Positions 41,674-54,929 of a stretch of 64,000 nucleotides of DNA are shown here, piece after piece. The stretch lies in sequence record NC_048047.1; one strand, 5' to 3'. The stretch's first letter is position 1, and every line of letters begins with the position of its first letter. The translations under genes and the position numbers were made by a program. The notes under the pieces are model-generated. The model was not told the origin of the DNA, ran no database searches, and was given only the letters and a program-made list of their open reading frames with translations.

Positions 41674-41934
41674 ATGCCCATCGGCAGTCACCATCGCTAT
41701 GTGATCGGCCAGCGCTGGTACACCTCCAGCGAGGTCCAGAGCCTGATCGTCCAGACCCTGCCCCGCCTGCCGGCCGGCAAGACCGCCGTGCGCCTGGACC
41801 TGGAGTTCGGCAGCGCCGATCTCTCCCAGAAGCGCATCAGCGCCATGCTCCAGGCGCTCGCCAAACAAGGCCGCGTGCGCAAGGTGCGCCATGGCCACTT
41901 CGAAGCCGTCCCCAGGAAACCCATCCATGACTGA
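41674..41934 (+). CDS. small winged-helix-like protein
   Basis: SD AGGAG; RISAMLQALAKQGRVRKVRHGHFEA wing motif. Confidence 0.6.
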   Translation: MPIGSHHRYVIGQRWYTSSEVQSLIVQTLPRLPAGKTAVRLDLEFGSADLSQKRISAMLQALAKQGRVRKVRHGHFEAVPRKPIHD

Positions 41935-43075
41935 ACCCAAGCGCAAGGGCCGCCCGCCCGGTGAGAGCAACCTGAAGCGCCGCGTCGCCGGCAAGCTCTA
42001 CGGCACGCGCGAGTTCAAGAACCTGATGATGGAGACCATCGCCAAAATCCCCAAGGGCGAGCCGACCGTCGCGGGCATCATCAAGCTGTGGGGCGACCCG
42101 GACTGGGACACCCCGCCGGCCAAGCTCGACCTGCGCTCCTGCATCGACCGCTATACCCGCCAGGGCACGCTGGTGCCCATGGAGCGAGGCGTCTACGAGG
42201 TCAGCGAAATCCCACGCCTGACGCCCTCGCATGATTTCCAGCTTCTGGCCGAGCGCGCCATCCGCGCCAACGGCGGCTTCATGAAGGCCAAGGACCTGCG
42301 CCGCGCCCTGGGCTATAGCTCCGAGGACGCCCGCAACACCACCCTGTGGAAGTCCCTGCGCATGGAGGGCTCGAAGGTCCGGCGCGACTGCTTCAAGCTC
42401 TACCTCTACAACCTGCCCGAAGACGATCTGCGCAACCTCGTGCTCCAGGGACGCTGGGCCTTGCCCTACTTCCGGGGCGTCTATCTGGGCATGGCCCCCA
42501 TGCCGGCCGATCCCAGCGCCCGGCCCTGGCGCGCCCTGCTCGATCAGCATCTCTACAGCGTCGGCGCCGCCCTGGCCCAGGCGCGCGAAGCCAATGGCGT
42601 CGACATCGAAGAGGTCCTGTCCTTCCCCGAGATCGTCGCCGCGCTCGATGTCGCCCGCCTGCGCAATCCCGCCCGCCTGTCCAATCGCGATCTGGCCCGG
42701 CAGGTCGAGGAGATGCCCGACAACGTCATCATCGTGGGCCAGCGCGAGACCCGCACCGGCCGGCTCGTCGACATCAAGGTCACCACGCCGCGCGACGAGT
42801 CCGATCCCAAGCACCTCCTGATCCGCGACGTGCGCCTGGATCAACTGGTCCGCCTGGAGAACCCGCCGGCCGATCCGCTGAGCGAGTTCCTCGACTATCA
42901 CGACTATGCCAGCCTCGGCGCGGACTTCTTCGAGGCCTGGGCCAAGGCCTTCAATGTCGATCCGATCGCCCTGTCGTGGGGGCGCCTTGGTCTGCGTCCC
43001 GACAGCGGCTGGCATGTGGGCGCCGGCGATGGGGATGAAAGCGGCTGGGCCGATGACGCCCAGGATGAGGACTAA
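41927..43075 (+). CDS. multi-HTH DNA-binding protein (candidate replication initiator or regulator)
   Basis: RYTRQGTLVPMERGVYEV wing; GGFMKAKDLRRALGYS HTH; VGAALAQAREANGVDIEEV XRE-like helix. Confidence 0.55.
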   Translation: MTEPKRKGRPPGESNLKRRVAGKLYGTREFKNLMMETIAKIPKGEPTVAGIIKLWGDPDWDTPPAKLDLRSCIDRYTRQGTLVPMERGVYEVSEIPRLTPSHDFQLLAERAIRANGGFMKAKDLRRALGYSSEDARNTTLWKSLRMEGSKVRRDCFKLYLYNLPEDDLRNLVLQGRWALPYFRGVYLGMAPMPADPSARPWRALLDQHLYSVGAALAQAREANGVDIEEVLSFPEIVAALDVARLRNPARLSNRDLARQVEEMPDNVIIVGQRETRTGRLVDIKVTTPRDESDPKHLLIRDVRLDQLVRLENPPADPLSEFLDYHDYASLGADFFEAWAKAFNVDPIALSWGRLGLRPDSGWHVGAGDGDESGWADDAQDED

Positions 43076-43204
43076 GGCGCGCCTCACCATCAAAAATCAC
43101 CAAGCCAATTGGTAGGGTGATTTAATGGTATAGATAAAGAACAGGCCTGGAACCCTTGCGCTGCTTGGGTTCTGGGCCTGAGTGCTGCCTGGGCCGCCGC
43201 CCGA

Positions 43205-43427
43205 GGGCACAGGCTTGCCTACTACAGCTAACGCATAATAAGGCTGCTTTAATAGGGTGCATAAAGAATAGCTCCCATGAGGATGCAGGACCTCCCCTGG
43301 AAAAGCTACCGCATAATAAGGCTGCTTATATGCACATCATAAAGAACACCCACAGACAGGGCACATAGGGCTTGCCCATAAAAGCTACTGCATAATAAGG
43401 TAGCTTATATGCATACCATAAAGAACA
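43205..43427. repeat. three degenerate ~45-bp direct repeats, 78-79 bp period, in an AT-rich island
   Basis: AGCTAxxGCATAATAAGG...CATAAAGAA with cores at 43233, 43311 and 43390. Confidence 0.85.
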
Positions 43428-44005
43428 CATGGCTTGCCATGCACATAACCATTCTCCCTCACTATTCTCACCACTAACACTTTTATTATCTATATAAATA
43501 ACCTTATTTTCCATCTATTGGGGTAGTAAAGAAGGAATCTAGTAGATAAGAGAGTAGAAAGGGTTGTGCAGCGTCTGGTTGTATGGTTGCCAGATCGAAT
43601 GGGCGACAGGGAGACACAGATGAGGCCCGCTCCGCGTAGGACGACACTGAAGGGTCGGTTTGAACCTCCATCCGAATGATCACTCTGAGTGCTCTGGACG
43701 GTTCGAGGATAAACCCCGCGACCGGCGAATGGACGACCCCGGAGAAACAATCGCGACTGACGAAGGAGGGCGCAGCCCGAGTGAGGCAGGACGCGTAGCA
43801 AACCTATGGACCTTGAGCTTCCAACCTACGGACCTCCTGGCGTAGCGCCGCTCGAAAATGAGAGGCCCGACCGGCGATCGAGGCGCAGCCGAGGAGACGG
43901 GATGGGAAAGGATTCATGACCCGATGTCGCGTTTCTTGACGTGTGTCACGTGACGTGTCATGAAGGTCCTCGAAGATGGTTAATGCGCCATCCAGGACCC
44001 ACCCG

Positions 44006-44731
44006 ATGTTCACCTCCATCCGCGCCGCTGATCCGCAAGACCCCCGTCCTCAACTGACGGACGATGCGACGCTGTGCGCCTCGGTCGCCACGACCCTGCC
44101 GCTCTATGCGGCCCTGGCCAAGAAGCGCGGCTCCGACCTCACCGACGACCAGATCGGCTTCGCCCTCGAAGTGGCCCTCAAGAAGGCCCGTTACTCGGAG
44201 GGCGACTGGGCCTGGAACGCCGCGCGTCTGATGGAGGACGCCTTCGGTCTGCCGGGCGATGGCAAGCTCCTGGCCCTGGTCGAGACGACCATCGCCCGGC
44301 TGAAGATCGAATGGGAGAGCCTGACCCGCGCCTGGGTCATGCGCACCGGCTATCGCATCCCCGCCGCGCTCGACGAAAAGGTCGAGGCCGTGGTCAATGG
44401 GGCGCCGACGGTGGGCAAGATCGTCGGCGTCTCCCGCGCGCTCGGCGTGGCCTACATGGACAACGAGGCCCACACCGAGACCTACCGCATCGACGGCGAG
44501 GACATCATCGCCAACTACACCCAAGGCCGGTTCGCGCCCGAGACCCCGATCCTGGGCTCGCGCTATGAGAACGCGCCGGCGCTGGCCGCCGCCGCGCAAG
44601 GCACGATGGGCAAGGCCCGCAAGCTGCCGGCCGCCGCGTCTGACGACGCCGCCTCGCGCCAGCAACGCATCGCCGACGCCTACAAGACCGGCAGCTTCGG
44701 CGCTGATCTCGACGGGCCGGGAGCGGCCTGA
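44006..44731 (+). CDS. hypothetical protein
   Basis: strong codon bias; TTGACG at 43936 upstream. Confidence 0.75.
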   Translation: MFTSIRAADPQDPRPQLTDDATLCASVATTLPLYAALAKKRGSDLTDDQIGFALEVALKKARYSEGDWAWNAARLMEDAFGLPGDGKLLALVETTIARLKIEWESLTRAWVMRTGYRIPAALDEKVEAVVNGAPTVGKIVGVSRALGVAYMDNEAHTETYRIDGEDIIANYTQGRFAPETPILGSRYENAPALAAAAQGTMGKARKLPAAASDDAASRQQRIADAYKTGSFGADLDGPGAA

Positions 44732-49615: not shown

Positions 49616-52432
49616 GTGACCCTCGCTTCCCATAAGACCGCCCTCTCGCCCTATCCCCATGAGGAGCGCGCCAAGCGCCGCGCCGGTGTGCGCCGTATGC
49701 GCAAGCTCGCCGAGGACATCCGGGCCGATCACGTCCGGGACCGCGAGCAGGACCCCCAGCGCGCGGCTGCCGCCACCGCCATCACCGGCGTGACCGAGCC
49801 CCATCACCAAGTCGCCCTGCTGGAGCAGATCGCCGACAAAATCCAGACCGAGCACCTGGACAAGCTTTATCCGCTGGCCCGTGACGACTTCTCCGCCTTC
49901 TGCGAGGTCATCAGCCCCGAGGAGCCGCCCGAGAGCCCCTGGCACATCTGGCTGACCAACTTCCTGCAAGAGGTCGAGCTTTCGCCCGATCTCAACAAGG
50001 TGGTGCTCAACGTGCCGCCCGGCCACGCCAAGCCCCTGCACGAGGACACCCTGGTGCTGATGGGCGATGGCGCCTATCGGCCGCTCAAGGACATCCAGGT
50101 CGGCGACCGCGTCTGGACCCACGCCGGCCGCGCCCGTCCCGTCACCGCCGTCCACGAGCAGGGCAAGCTCTCCACCGTCGAGATCGTCACCGAGGCGGGC
50201 CGCATTGTGCGCGCCGCCCCCGACCACCCGTTCCTGGTCAAGCTGGGGACCAAGGACGACGGGACCCCGATCGCCGAATGGATCAACGCCGGCGACCTGC
50301 GGCCGGGCATGCCCGTGGTGATATCGGCCCACAAGCCGCCGAGCGTCGAGCACCGTCACTATGACGGCGACCACACCACGGCCGAGACCTACAACAAGCC
50401 CCTGCGCCGGGCCGAGGCCCTGGGCTACATGGCGCTGGGCGGGGCGCTGCACTGGCAGAAGTCCAAGACCCAGGTCACCCCCTCGCCCGACTTCCGTCTG
50501 TCGACCCACAAGCGCGCGCTGATGAAGCACATCGTCAAGCTGGTCAAGACCGGCCTTGGCCACCACATCAGCGTCTGCAAGGTCGCCTCCCAGAACACCT
50601 TCGTCGCCCGCCTGGGCGTCAAGGGTTTCCGTGATCTCAACGCCGGCGACTGGTTCACCTACGAGCCGGAGAAGCGCCGCGTCCCGCCGTGCATCTTCAC
50701 CGCCAGCAAGGACGAGATCGCCGCCTTCCTGGGCGCGGCCTTCTCCCTGCGCGGCGAGGTCATCCGCCGGCTGCGGGGCAAGAACCTGCGCCTCTACCAT
50801 CGCTCTATGGACCTGCTTCTGGACGTGCAGAAGTTGTGCGCCACGCTAGGGGCCGCAGGAAGCCTCGACAGGGGCGATCCTGACTTCGGGGGCCGACCCT
50901 GCTTGAACCTCGACTTCGCCGCTGTGGCAGCCCTCCAGGCGGCCGGAGTGAGCTTCGATGGCGAGACCGACACCGACCTCGTCAATCAGCCGCCCTTCAC
51001 CATGCTGATCCCGCGTCCGAGCGACACCGACGCGGTCGTCTCGGTGCTGCCGGCCAAGAAGGCCCGCTGCCTGTGCCTGACCGTCGAGGAGGACCACAGC
51101 TTCACCGCCGAGACCCTGGTGGTCAAGAACTCCACCTATGCCTCGCGCCTGTTCGTGGCGTGGCGCCTGGGGCGTGACCCCAACCAGCGCATCATCGGCG
51201 GCGGCCACAGTCAGAACTTCGTCGAGAACGAGTTCTCCTCGAAAATCCGCAACATCGTCACCTCGCCGGAATTCCAGCGCGTCTTCCCTGGCATCACCGT
51301 CGACCACCAGACCAACGCCAAGCAGCAGTGGGCGATCGCCGGCTACAAGGGCCAGTACGTGGCGCGCGGCGTGGGCCAGGGCATCCACGGTTTCCGCGCC
51401 ACCTTCATCTGCGTCGATGACCCCTACTCCAAGATCGAGGACGCCAACAGCCCGGTTCACCGGCGCAAGGTCGAGCAGTGGTTCGACGCCGACATTGGTT
51501 CGCGCGCCCTGCCCAACTGCAAGACCTTCCTGATCATGACCCGCTTCCATGGTGAGGATTTGACTAATCACCTGGAGGAGATGAACAAGGTCCTCCCCGA
51601 CAATGCAAAGTGGAAGATCGTTACTGTTCCGGCCATCTGCTTTGATGAAGAAACAGACCTTCTAGGCCGCAAAATCGGTGAGTTTTTGTGGGATTACTAT
51701 CCGTTGTCCTACTTCGTTGACAAGAAGATTCAGTTTGGATTTCTGGGTTTCGCCCTCACCTACCAACAGGTGTCGTCTGCCGCAAATCCCGACAACATCG
51801 CCAGCAAGTTCAACTTCTACGATTCCCTGCCCCACGAGTCGCCTGAAGTTAAGGCCCGCGCCCCTCGCGACCAGTTCGGCAGGCCGCAGATTAACGAGGG
51901 TGATTTTTACCGGCGCACCATCGTCTCGGTCGATACCGCCTCCAAGACCACCGAACGCGCCGACTACACGGTCGTGCAGGTCTGGCGCGAGGATTTCCGG
52001 GGCAAGCACTACCTCGTCCACCAGGACCGCCGGAAGGTCGAGTTCAACGACCTGATCTCGATGATCGAGGCGCCGGCCATCAAGTACCGGGCCGACCAAA
52101 TCCTCGTCGAGGACAAGGGCTCGGGCACCCAGTACCTGCAAAACCGGGGCTCGACCGACAATCAGAAGCGTCAGGCGCCCTGTCCGCTGGTGGCGGTCAA
52201 TCCTGGCGTGGCCGGCAAGAGCTTCCGTTTTGACGGTGTCACGCCCATGATCGAGGGCGGCGATGTCTGGCTGCCCAAGGATGCGCCCTGGATCGAGCAG
52301 CTTCTGGTCGAGATCGGCCAGTTCCCCGACAGCGCTCACGATGACCAAGTCGACGCCATGAGCCAGTACCTCAACCACGCCAAGAAGAACCGCACCCGCT
52401 ACGGCAGTCGCAAGATCACCAAGCACACGTAA
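49616..52432 (+). CDS. terL: terminase large subunit containing an intein
   Basis: Walker A PPGHAK/ST split by the intein; GVGQGIHGFRA, ICVDDP Walker B, LIMTRFH, nuclease SVDTA, LVEDKGSG, HDDQVDAMSQ. Confidence 0.95.
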   Translation: MTLASHKTALSPYPHEERAKRRAGVRRMRKLAEDIRADHVRDREQDPQRAAAATAITGVTEPHHQVALLEQIADKIQTEHLDKLYPLARDDFSAFCEVISPEEPPESPWHIWLTNFLQEVELSPDLNKVVLNVPPGHAKPLHEDTLVLMGDGAYRPLKDIQVGDRVWTHAGRARPVTAVHEQGKLSTVEIVTEAGRIVRAAPDHPFLVKLGTKDDGTPIAEWINAGDLRPGMPVVISAHKPPSVEHRHYDGDHTTAETYNKPLRRAEALGYMALGGALHWQKSKTQVTPSPDFRLSTHKRALMKHIVKLVKTGLGHHISVCKVASQNTFVARLGVKGFRDLNAGDWFTYEPEKRRVPPCIFTASKDEIAAFLGAAFSLRGEVIRRLRGKNLRLYHRSMDLLLDVQKLCATLGAAGSLDRGDPDFGGRPCLNLDFAAVAALQAAGVSFDGETDTDLVNQPPFTMLIPRPSDTDAVVSVLPAKKARCLCLTVEEDHSFTAETLVVKNSTYASRLFVAWRLGRDPNQRIIGGGHSQNFVENEFSSKIRNIVTSPEFQRVFPGITVDHQTNAKQQWAIAGYKGQYVARGVGQGIHGFRATFICVDDPYSKIEDANSPVHRRKVEQWFDADIGSRALPNCKTFLIMTRFHGEDLTNHLEEMNKVLPDNAKWKIVTVPAICFDEETDLLGRKIGEFLWDYYPLSYFVDKKIQFGFLGFALTYQQVSSAANPDNIASKFNFYDSLPHESPEVKARAPRDQFGRPQINEGDFYRRTIVSVDTASKTTERADYTVVQVWREDFRGKHYLVHQDRRKVEFNDLISMIEAPAIKYRADQILVEDKGSGTQYLQNRGSTDNQKRQAPCPLVAVNPGVAGKSFRFDGVTPMIEGGDVWLPKDAPWIEQLLVEIGQFPDSAHDDQVDAMSQYLNHAKKNRTRYGSRKITKHT
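50033..51130 (+). mobile_element. 366-aa intein (Pro1 start, block-F Cys, class-3-like) with degenerate LAGLIDADG region
   Basis: PLHEDTLVLMGDG...IQVGDRV (block A), APDHPF (block B), CLCLTVEEDHSF (block F), VVKN/S end. Confidence 0.9.
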
Positions 52433-53694: not shown

Positions 53695-54103
53695 ATAGTT
53701 TGTCCGAAAGGTGACAGCGTCGGCGCAAAAGAAATCGCGTTGACTCCGCAAACCCAGGCCAGCCTTGACGTTGCGCCATTCTCCGCAGGTTTTGCGGTGA
53801 TTGCCCCGGCTATTCGCCGCACGTGTCAGCAAAACCGCCTATGTGACGTCCTGCTTGACATGGCTCAAGTTCCGTGGCACGGGAAAGGCTCGGGCGTGTG
53901 CTCGGATGGAAAGCTCCGCTGTCGGCTTCAAGCCAAGGCCTGGGTGGAACACCAGCGCTAGACCTGCCCGCCGACGCCCTCGACCCCATGCGATCGCCGG
54001 CGGGGGACCACCGCCTTCGCCTGCCACACCCGGCGAGGATCGAAGGCGAGAAACGCCCACCAGAGCCCGCCGCCCTGGTGGGCGTTTTGGTGTCCGGCCT
54101 TGA

Positions 54104-54298
54104 ACTTGACGTCGGGCCATTTCGCCGCCGACTTGACGTCGGATCATTTGCCCGGCCGACTTGATGATCGCCCATTTCGCCTGGACTTGACGCCGGCGCA
54201 TTTCAAATTTGACGCGAGCGCATTTCCTTCCCAAATTTGACGAAAGGCCATTTCAAACTTGACTTGACGTCATTTCATTTCTTGACCTGACGCCATTC
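54104..54298. repeat. array of TTGACG-N6-CATTT units
   Basis: units at 54106, 54133, 54161, 54187, 54209, 54237, 54259, 54264, 54282, plus an outlier at 53765. Confidence 0.9.
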
Positions 54299-54314
54299 CA
54301 TCCCGCTGGCCGGG

Positions 54315-54530
54315 TAAGGTTAACGGCCGATTAACCATGTGGCGAGTAAGGTTAATTTTCAAGGTTAACGCGCATGGTGAACGAACAGGGTTAACGCGCC
54401 TTAAGGTTACCCGTTAAGGTTAACAGGCGTTAAGGTTAACGGTTAGGGTTGAAAATTAAGGTTAACCCGGCTCAAGGCCCTACCGGCGGCCGTTAAGGTT
54501 AACGCCAGGGGCAAAATCGTTAAGGTTAAC
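54315..54530. repeat. cluster of TTAAGGTTAAC-like repeats including a TTAA-N7-TTAA box
   Basis: full copies at 54414, 54430, 54456, 54493, 54520 plus partial copies; TTAA-N7-TTAA at 54320-54334. Confidence 0.85.
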
Positions 54531-54533
54531 GCC

Positions 54534-54620
54534 CAAAACAGCGAAAATCAGCAAAAATCGTCCAAAAATAGCGAAAATCAGCGCAAAATAGCGCTTTTTA
54601 GGCCGAAAATCACCGAAAAT
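54534..54620. other. phased A-tract region (predicted bent DNA)
   Basis: repeated A4-5 tracts about every 10-11 bp (CAAAACAGCGAAAATCAGCAAAAATCGTCCAAAAATAGCGAAAATCAGCGCAAAATAG...). Confidence 0.75.
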
Positions 54621-54929
54621 CCGGTTTTCTGACCCATTTTAGGGTTAATGTCGCGCCCTAACCCGATTTTGGGCGACACCCAGGCGAACGGGCGCCGGCC
54701 GGGTCGTGATCCCCGGCCGGTGGGTCAGTGGAGCAGCCAGAGCAGAAACGCCAGCGCCGCCAGTGACCAGCCGTTCAGCAATTTCAGGGTGGGCGCCTCT
54801 CTCGTCTGCCGTGGCCGCTCGCCACCCCTCATTCATCGCATACAAGAAAACTGTTGCCAAGCCCCAAAGATCGCTTGACAGCATAAAAGCCCAATGCGAC
54901 AAGAGGCCATCCAAACGGGAGACACCCCA

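Follow-up and report, generated by a model that had tools for sequence, protein, structure and literature searches.

Caulobacter phage CcrBL9 (MH588546.1; 322,272 base pairs, bp) is a giant phage of the genus Bertelyvirus within the Dolichocephalovirinae. The window analysed here is a stretch of 64,000 nucleotides (nt) from this genome, position 1 of which is record position 248,001, and the element in question lies in the gene-free gap of 930 bp between gp496 and gp497 (window 43076-44005). The gap holds an AT-rich island with an array of long repeats, which the initial annotation had put forward as a candidate replication origin made of iterons and a DNA-unwinding element, with a structured non-coding RNA as the alternative. 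Upstream of the gap, gp495 (41674-41934) encodes a stand-alone winged-helix protein of 86 amino acids (aa) and gp496 (41927-43075) a protein of 382 aa that is the candidate binder of the repeats. Downstream, gp497 (44006-44731) encodes a conserved protein of 241 aa with no assigned function (phrog_11118), and all three genes lie on the plus strand. Homologues of gp497 are found in 44 phage records, and the protein atlas returned just unnamed viral clusters for it. The gene is the first of a run toward the resolvase and terminase genes, with the small and large terminase genes five to six kilobases (kb) downstream of the gap and terS 5.4 kb from the repeats. No published description of the island or of gp496 was found in the literature consulted.

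Repeat array and AT-rich core of the island

The array consists of three direct units of 49 nt on the plus strand (family D1), at 43223-43271, 43301-43349 and 43380-43428, spaced 78 and 79 bp apart and 73-90% identical. Unit 2 serves as the reference copy, to which units 1 and 3 are 73% and 90% identical, respectively, and unit 3 contains an internal dyad, AAGCTAC...GTAGCTT (pair I7). The three repeats reported initially are thus confirmed, with the core motif GCATAATAAGG at 43233, 43311 and 43390 (0.23 occurrences expected by chance in the window), and a further core motif, CATAAAGAA, likewise occurs three times in the window against 0.07 expected. Within the whole 322-kb genome, these core motifs are confined to the island. 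Tandem Repeats Finder reported no repeat at the island because the inter-unit spacers differ. Upstream of the array lies a half-unit (unit 0; 43114-43144, plus strand), a weaker copy that corresponds to the repeat's 3' half and has GATAAAGAAC at its end. With unit 0 included, the family (D2) has four copies at spacings of 127, 78 and 79 bp, and a counterpart of unit 0 is present in the related phages CcrSC and BL47. The three palindromes said to share a GGCTTGCC core are also found as described, all read on the plus strand. Two are mini-palindromes that lie 11 nt before a unit, AGGCTTGCCT at 43211-43220 before unit 1 and GGGCTTGCCC at 43368-43377 before unit 3, the latter with a counterpart in CcrSC, and the third, CATGGCTTGCCATG at 43428-43441, abuts unit 3 on its downstream side. 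Of the 20 occurrences of GGCTTGCC on both strands of the genome, three cluster within 220 bp at the island in a single orientation.

The sharp drop in GC content noted at the outset proved to be the GC minimum of the genome, with 39% in the lowest 300-bp window versus a genome mean of 63.7%. By nearest-neighbour calculation, the genome has its lowest duplex stability in the island at all three window sizes (50, 100 and 200 bp), 6-7 standard deviations from the mean. The strand asymmetry ascribed to the AT-rich stretch 43450-43570 holds as well: a pyrimidine-rich tract at 43442-43480 (31% purine on the plus strand), placed between unit 3 and an inverted unit, is followed by a core of 16% GC at 43481-43518 and by a purine-rich tract at 43519-43562 (80% purine on the plus strand), which starts with GGGGTAG and has a GANTC site at 43535. 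The core contains, on the minus strand at 43487-43513, an inverted and degenerate copy of the unit core (pairs I2, 27 nt, 74%, and I3, 17 nt, 82%), and the least stable 50 bp of the genome are found here. With this inverted unit, the array of CcrBL9 reads ->->-><-.

To assess the inverted copy, the tract of each genome was reverse-complemented and aligned to the units of every genome, with 500 shuffles for comparison. The scores were 38 in CcrSC and 31 in phiCbK (reached by 0/500 shuffles in both), 27 in BL47 (1/500) and 22 in CcrBL9, where 13/500 shuffles reached the score. A tract fits the units of the genome it comes from better than foreign units, and a forward-orientation control was flat. 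In phage Colossus, the units have a pyrimidine-rich flank whose inverted copy makes up the purine-rich tract (pair I3), and, by analogy, such a unit-flank inversion may explain part of the pyrimidine-to-purine asymmetry in CcrBL9. A G-run and a GAGAG box stand 3' of the inverted unit in 10/10 lineages read. A T4-late-type TATAAATA box in the core was considered and set aside; it is seen in CcrBL9 and CcrSC only, and the inverted unit accounts for it.

Recurrence of the array in related phages

Conservation in relatives had been named initially as a check on the island, and the design does recur: most of the related lineages examined carry two to five direct units and one inverted unit, always in the gap between the homologues of gp496 and gp497 and as a single copy per genome. 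The period is mostly 76-80 bp, with extremes of 60 and 89 bp. Direct units follow each other at 79/89 bp in CcrSC, 79/80 bp in BL47 and J4, 70/71 bp in C1, 76 bp in phiCbK and 77/78 bp in Colossus and CcrPW. Beyond these phages, Brevundimonas phage Bajun shows a period of 76 bp and an inverted arm of 34 nt, Brevundimonas jumbo phage Bambus has five direct units (60/62/76/76 bp) and an inverted arm of 38 nt, and a metagenomic relative (L016) has two direct units 78 bp apart and an inverted arm of 51 nt. The ->-><- layout is seen in CcrSC, BL47/J4, phiCbK, Colossus, Bajun, Bambus and L016. Unit identity is 0.75-0.86 within a genome versus 0.59-0.66 between genomes, and the units of CcrBL9 and CcrSC diverge although their flanks are ~82% identical. 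What is conserved is the architecture and the period; the unit sequence is lineage-specific. Two further identities of the array were considered and dropped, namely a CRISPR-like mini-array, as the repeats are non-identical, and an attP site, as no integrase gene is adjacent; in both cases the design also recurs with different sequences. Around distant gp496 homologues, the contigs were mostly too short to show the genomic context, L016 being informative. On the contig of another distant metagenomic gp496 homologue (L013:7950-8300), a terminator precedes three ACTCTCC boxes, after which come five GGAGAGT boxes at 67-72-bp spacing, with an AT-rich turn at the contig end. Judged from the sequence, an array of this kind may be present there, truncated where the contig stops.

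The lineage-specific units bear on the proposal that the repeats are tandem promoters or part of a structured non-coding RNA, which appears very improbable. The layout does recall the T7 primary origin and the A1-A3 promoters, with units about 75-125 bp apart, and hairpin plus T-rich sites occur on the minus strand. However, phages of one host strain have different units, which argues against host-polymerase promoters and against host factors in general. For a phage RNA polymerase, no PF00940 match was obtained in CcrBL9, although the control was also silent and this absence is thus weak, and no sigma factor was detected. The unit motifs are, moreover, used nowhere else in the genome. Over the repeats, the structured RNA suggested initially as the alternative to an origin was not borne out, as Rfam gave no relevant match, the fold energies of the repeats equal those of shuffled sequences (z -0.46 and +0.15), and the core gave a z of -0.83.

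Co-variation of the repeats with gp495 and gp496

The lineage-specific unit sequence is matched by the genes upstream of the array. Between CcrBL9 and CcrSC, identity is 90% for gp497, 74% for gp495 and 62% for gp496, and between J4 and C1 it is 96% for gp497, 29% for gp496 and 35% for gp495. A sliding profile of J4 against C1 shows one divergent block of ~2.4 kb, mostly at 12-64% identity per 100 bp, that spans gp495, gp496, the units and the AT core and has its right edge within the purine tract. In the left flank, identity is about 85-97%, and in the right flank it reaches 99-100% after a transition of ~390 bp at 73-84%. The units and gp495/gp496 thus change together between near-constant flanks, which is the signature of a cognate protein/site cassette, bounded on its right by the purine tract and followed by gp497 as the constant right flank. 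These sequence comparisons support well the interpretation that the island forms the cis-acting part of a specificity cassette whose other half is gp495-gp496, and that the array and its DNA-binding genes are exchanged as a block between near-identical phages.

Packaging and DNA maturation as improbable alternatives

With terminase genes downstream, the repeats could in principle be a terminase recognition (pac) site to which the small terminase binds; repeat arrays are common at pac and cos sites, as in lambda cosB and SPP1 pac, and the sites lie 5.4 kb upstream of terS. This explanation is nonetheless extremely unlikely. The small terminases of CcrBL9 and CcrSC are 97% identical, with identical first 120 residues (the DNA-binding half), yet the unit cores of the two phages differ, and a terminase that stays constant while the units differ disfavours a pac site. 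In addition, the genome end lies inside terL, 8.5 kb from the island. The CcrBL9 record has a direct terminal repeat of 22,260 bp with its left end inside the large terminase gene, and a genome end inside terL is likewise described for phiCbK (PMC3556154).

Another possibility is an architectural or DNA-maturation site bound by gp496, which might serve in anchoring, in a segregation-like process or in organising concatemers, or form a cruciform substrate for the RuvC-like resolvase encoded nearby. Such a role would suit a single-copy array of long modules with a large dyad (arms of 51 nt in L016 and 34 nt in Bajun), placed in a module that ends with resolvase and terminase genes. It is still improbable, as the CcrBL9 core folds as DNA no better than shuffled sequences do (z -0.83), the terminal repeat starts 8.5 kb away from the island, and neither a partition ATPase nor another partner gene was recognised next to the array. 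Elsewhere, the region that ranks second in the genome for low duplex stability is found at genome 22.7-23.2 kb, just past the end of the left terminal repeat. Boxes of the form GTCTGAAAAATTTT(T)ATAAAAAA recur in this region, which may mark the terminal-repeat boundary.

Predicted domain organization of gp496

The candidate binder gp496 has an N-terminal AT-hook-like arm (KRKGRPPG), a basic arm of the GRP type being present in the five closest homologues, and an acidic tail, as have many homologues. A winged helix at about residues 15-97 (VIA-align Z 8.3) is seen in its AlphaFold model (predicted local distance difference test, pLDDT, 82), and the model probably includes a second winged helix. 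gp495, which belongs to the variable cassette, is paralogous to the first winged helix (hhalign with the gp496 family, probability 90%, E 1.6e-6). The C-terminal half of gp496, folded separately (pLDDT 75.5), gives a homogeneous hit list of XRE/Cro/C-protein helix-turn-helix (HTH) domains, and in the model it possibly contains a split XRE-type HTH.

Relatives of gp496 are rare, with 31 among 1.8 billion representatives in a full HMMER scan, and a word-based protein search with gp496 returned the query itself as the sole match. All 31 homologues match phrog_10876, whose function is unassigned. In Pfam, gp496 has only a weak match to AbiEi_4 and in NCBIfam none, and profile and fold searches of the PDB and the protein atlas gave generic winged-helix/XRE leads only. 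No similarity was found between gp496 and the neighbouring winged-helix/Tat proteins. From the models we infer that gp496 is a multi-domain DNA binder.

Replication origin as a candidate function

The cognate cassette may act as the replication origin of CcrBL9, a candidate function that is proposed tentatively from the sequence. An origin is favoured because a single-copy site has a specific binder encoded alongside and because direct and facing sites lie on either side of the DNA that melts most easily in a genome of 64% GC. It is also favoured because the family has a T7-like DNA polymerase, as reported for the phiCbK phage family and seen in CcrBL9 as a PF00476 match at 131.5-132.8 kb, and because the founding phiCbK genome paper describes neither a replication origin nor an initiator (PMC3556154). 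The initial proposal of iterons plus an unwinding element stands insofar as repeats resembling specific sites lie beside the most meltable DNA and co-vary with the adjacent DNA-binding genes. It has to be revised in that the AT-rich stretch is not a plain unwinding element, as it is largely an inverted copy of the unit, and that units of 49 nt at a 78-bp period are not classical iterons of 17-22 bp.

In the proposed mechanism, gp496 would bind every unit and form an oligomeric nucleoprotein complex, which gp495, as a single-domain paralogue, could help or antagonise. The last direct unit faces the inverted unit across the AT core, and binding of gp496 would strain and open this core. The phage helicase and the T7-like DNA polymerase would then be loaded at the opened core, perhaps via the acidic tail of gp496. 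It could further be speculated that a rightward, purine-rich transcript from the G-run primes or activates initiation, as at T4 and T7 origins. In this mechanism, the island would be the origin for CcrBL9 and the whole Dolichocephalovirinae, and gp496 the initiator. The wider proposal, that gp496 (PHROG 10876) represents a new phage initiator family and the ->-><- array a new origin type of all Dolichocephalovirinae, exchanged as an origin-specificity cassette, is more tentative again. A conserved single-copy cis element with a cognate candidate protein family offers a testable origin/initiator candidate.

Several observations weigh against an origin. Classical iterons are about 17-22 bp long and in helical phase, unlike the 49-nt units with their period of 78 bp; DnaA, IHF and full CtrA sites were not found, and none is conserved across nine islands. 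No inverted copy was detectable in C1 by alignment against shuffles, and in CcrRogue the gap is AT-rich, yet repeats were not resolved at the thresholds used. In no search did gp496 fit a known initiator family (Rep, O, DnaA-like), and its C-terminal half resembles XRE-type regulators such as C.AhdI, at a modest Z of 6.4 (root-mean-square deviation 1.9 over 66 residues). XRE-type regulators are mostly transcription factors. The polymerase gene lies ~160 kb from the island. The genome-wide GC skew, proposed initially as a check, makes no turn at the island, either cumulatively or at third positions per gene strand; it follows the coding strand and is thus uninformative on the origin.

Within the terminal repeat, next to the terminase genes (window 53765-54650), there is a second conserved repeat array, which is likewise a candidate origin and as such also weighs against the island. 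At window 54150-54700 (genome 2100-2700), the terminal repeat has an AT-poor island with TTGACG-N6-CATTTC units, many GTTAAGGTTAAC boxes and GAAAATC repeats, which is a candidate for an alternative origin or a packaging site.

A possible transcription switch and the conserved non-coding stretch

The XRE-like half of gp496 suggests a different function for the cassette, namely a local transcription switch with gp496 and/or gp495 as repressor or activator at the array. Here, the inverted unit would overlap the upstream part of an activator-dependent rightward promoter with its start at the G-run, and the transcript would run through a GC-rich leader with nut-like hairpins into the gp497-resolvase-terminase genes. 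The homogeneous XRE/Cro/C-protein HTH matches speak for such a switch, as does a CTAT(G/T)-type box that, together with the G-run, follows the inverted unit in 10/10 lineages and resembles the early-promoter -10 box (CCTATGCG). It would also give a role to the ~400 nt of conserved non-coding DNA with repeated hairpin motifs downstream, and repressor/operator cassettes are also swapped as units between phages, as seen for lambdoid immunity regions. However, no TTGAC-type -35 box exists anywhere in the island, and a sigma-70 scan found sites no more numerous than in shuffles. The unit motifs are confined to the island and occur nowhere else in the genome, which excludes a regulator of middle or late genes in general. 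For gp497, there is a separate host-type promoter with a dyad 450 bp further downstream, and an operator would need neither the extreme AT richness nor conserved modules of 76-80 bp. Taken together, a switch is the strongest alternative to an origin, yet rather unlikely, and if true it would be a new lineage-specific switch before the DNA-maturation and packaging genes. The two functions can, by analogy, be combined as in transcription-activated origins, which T4 and T7 have, and either an origin or a switch would give the first functional handle on PHROG 10876. An RNA sequencing series of phiCbK infection exists (PMC10688885).

The conserved GC-rich non-coding stretch, seen in alignments of relatives, covers 43563-43975 on the plus strand. 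A motif of ~45 nt occurs twice in it, at 43752-43799 and 43866-43907, and consists of CGACCGGCGA, a short spacer, a GGGC-GMA-GCCC hairpin and GAG..GGGA. It is invariant across Bertelyviruses whose proteins are ~60% identical, and its layout resembles, at the level of sequence, the boxA/boxB elements of nut sites. A third copy of the motif is found at genome position 151670. Directly upstream of this third copy, at genome 150.95-151.25 kb, lies a third AT-rich spot, which comprises a promoter of the host type (TTGAAG ... GCTATAGTC) and a small gene of unusually high AT content. The GC-rich downstream part shows only weak covariation between two lineages, and CcrBL9 and CcrSC differ here by indels of 5, 22 and 31 nt, which indicates that the stretch contains no conserved open reading frame (ORF). 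A small ORF at 43621-43680 (19 codons) was rejected: its ribosome site GGGAGACAC is that of phage early genes, but its start codon is absent in CcrSC and its peptide is not conserved in BL47. At the end of the stretch, in the promoter region of gp497, a long dyad at 43915-43962 (CATGAC...TGTCACGTGACGTGTCATG) encloses TTGACG at 43936 and is followed by ATGGTTAA, a box resembling a CtrA half-site. This region (43915-43983) is near-invariant in all Bertelyviruses, and GAATC stands beside the TTGACA equivalents in phiCbK, Rogue, Bajun and L016.

On the other side of the array, an inverted repeat of 15+15 nt (43094-43123; pair I5, 80% complementary) lies immediately 3' of the gp496 stop codon. It is followed at 43146-43180 on the plus strand by a GC-rich hairpin, read from the sequence, which is terminator-like but has no T run. 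Because of its G-T pairs, this hairpin fits RNA of the plus strand, and clear intrinsic terminators are found at its position in Colossus (from the annotation), BL47 and Bambus.

Comparison with known systems

The protein/site specificity cassette is, as far as the sequence tells, probably of the origin type, and what is unusual in it are the long modules and an uncharacterised multi-domain binder. Iteron origins with an adjacent initiator, such as lambda ori/O and its lambdoid variants, pSC101 and P1 oriR, share with it direct and inverted site copies beside meltable DNA (pSC101 has three direct iterons plus inverted repeats), an adjacent DNA-binding gene, and sites and protein that change together and are exchanged as a cassette. 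They differ in having iterons of 17-22 nt at 22-33 bp, whereas the units of CcrBL9 are ~49 nt at 76-80 bp. In addition, the CcrBL9 island lacks DnaA and IHF sites, gp496 falls outside the known Rep/O families, and the array lies behind the gene, not inside or upstream of it.

In the T7 primary origin, an AT-rich stretch comes after two tandem promoters spaced about 75 bp, and T4 oriF and oriG have a promoter and a downstream unwinding element and are primed by an R-loop. The island resembles these origins in its tandem units at about 76-80 bp, its AT-rich core and a tract that would give a purine-rich RNA. Unlike in these systems, no phage RNA polymerase was found in CcrBL9, and the units are not promoters used elsewhere in its genome. 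A further point of likeness is the T7-like DNA polymerase in the family (PMC3556154).

Repressor/operator and C-protein cassettes, known from lambdoid immunity regions and from the controller proteins of restriction-modification systems, are similar in the possible XRE-type HTH of gp496, in dyad sites and in the mosaic exchange of protein and site. In contrast, the CcrBL9 sites have no recognisable overlapping promoter, the genes are co-directional instead of divergent, and known operators are much shorter and less AT-rich than the modules. Dyad-symmetry origins of eukaryotic DNA viruses, such as oriS of herpes simplex virus (HSV) and oriP of Epstein-Barr virus (EBV), likewise combine direct repeats with a dyad whose two sites face each other around an AT-rich spacer; the proteins and hosts are unrelated, and the analogy is one of layout only.

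The phiCbK-like phages are standard tools for Caulobacter cell-cycle research, and a terminase intein has already been published for them. In CcrBL9, the large terminase gene (window 49616-52432) likewise contains an intein, with Hint and intein-splicing matches.

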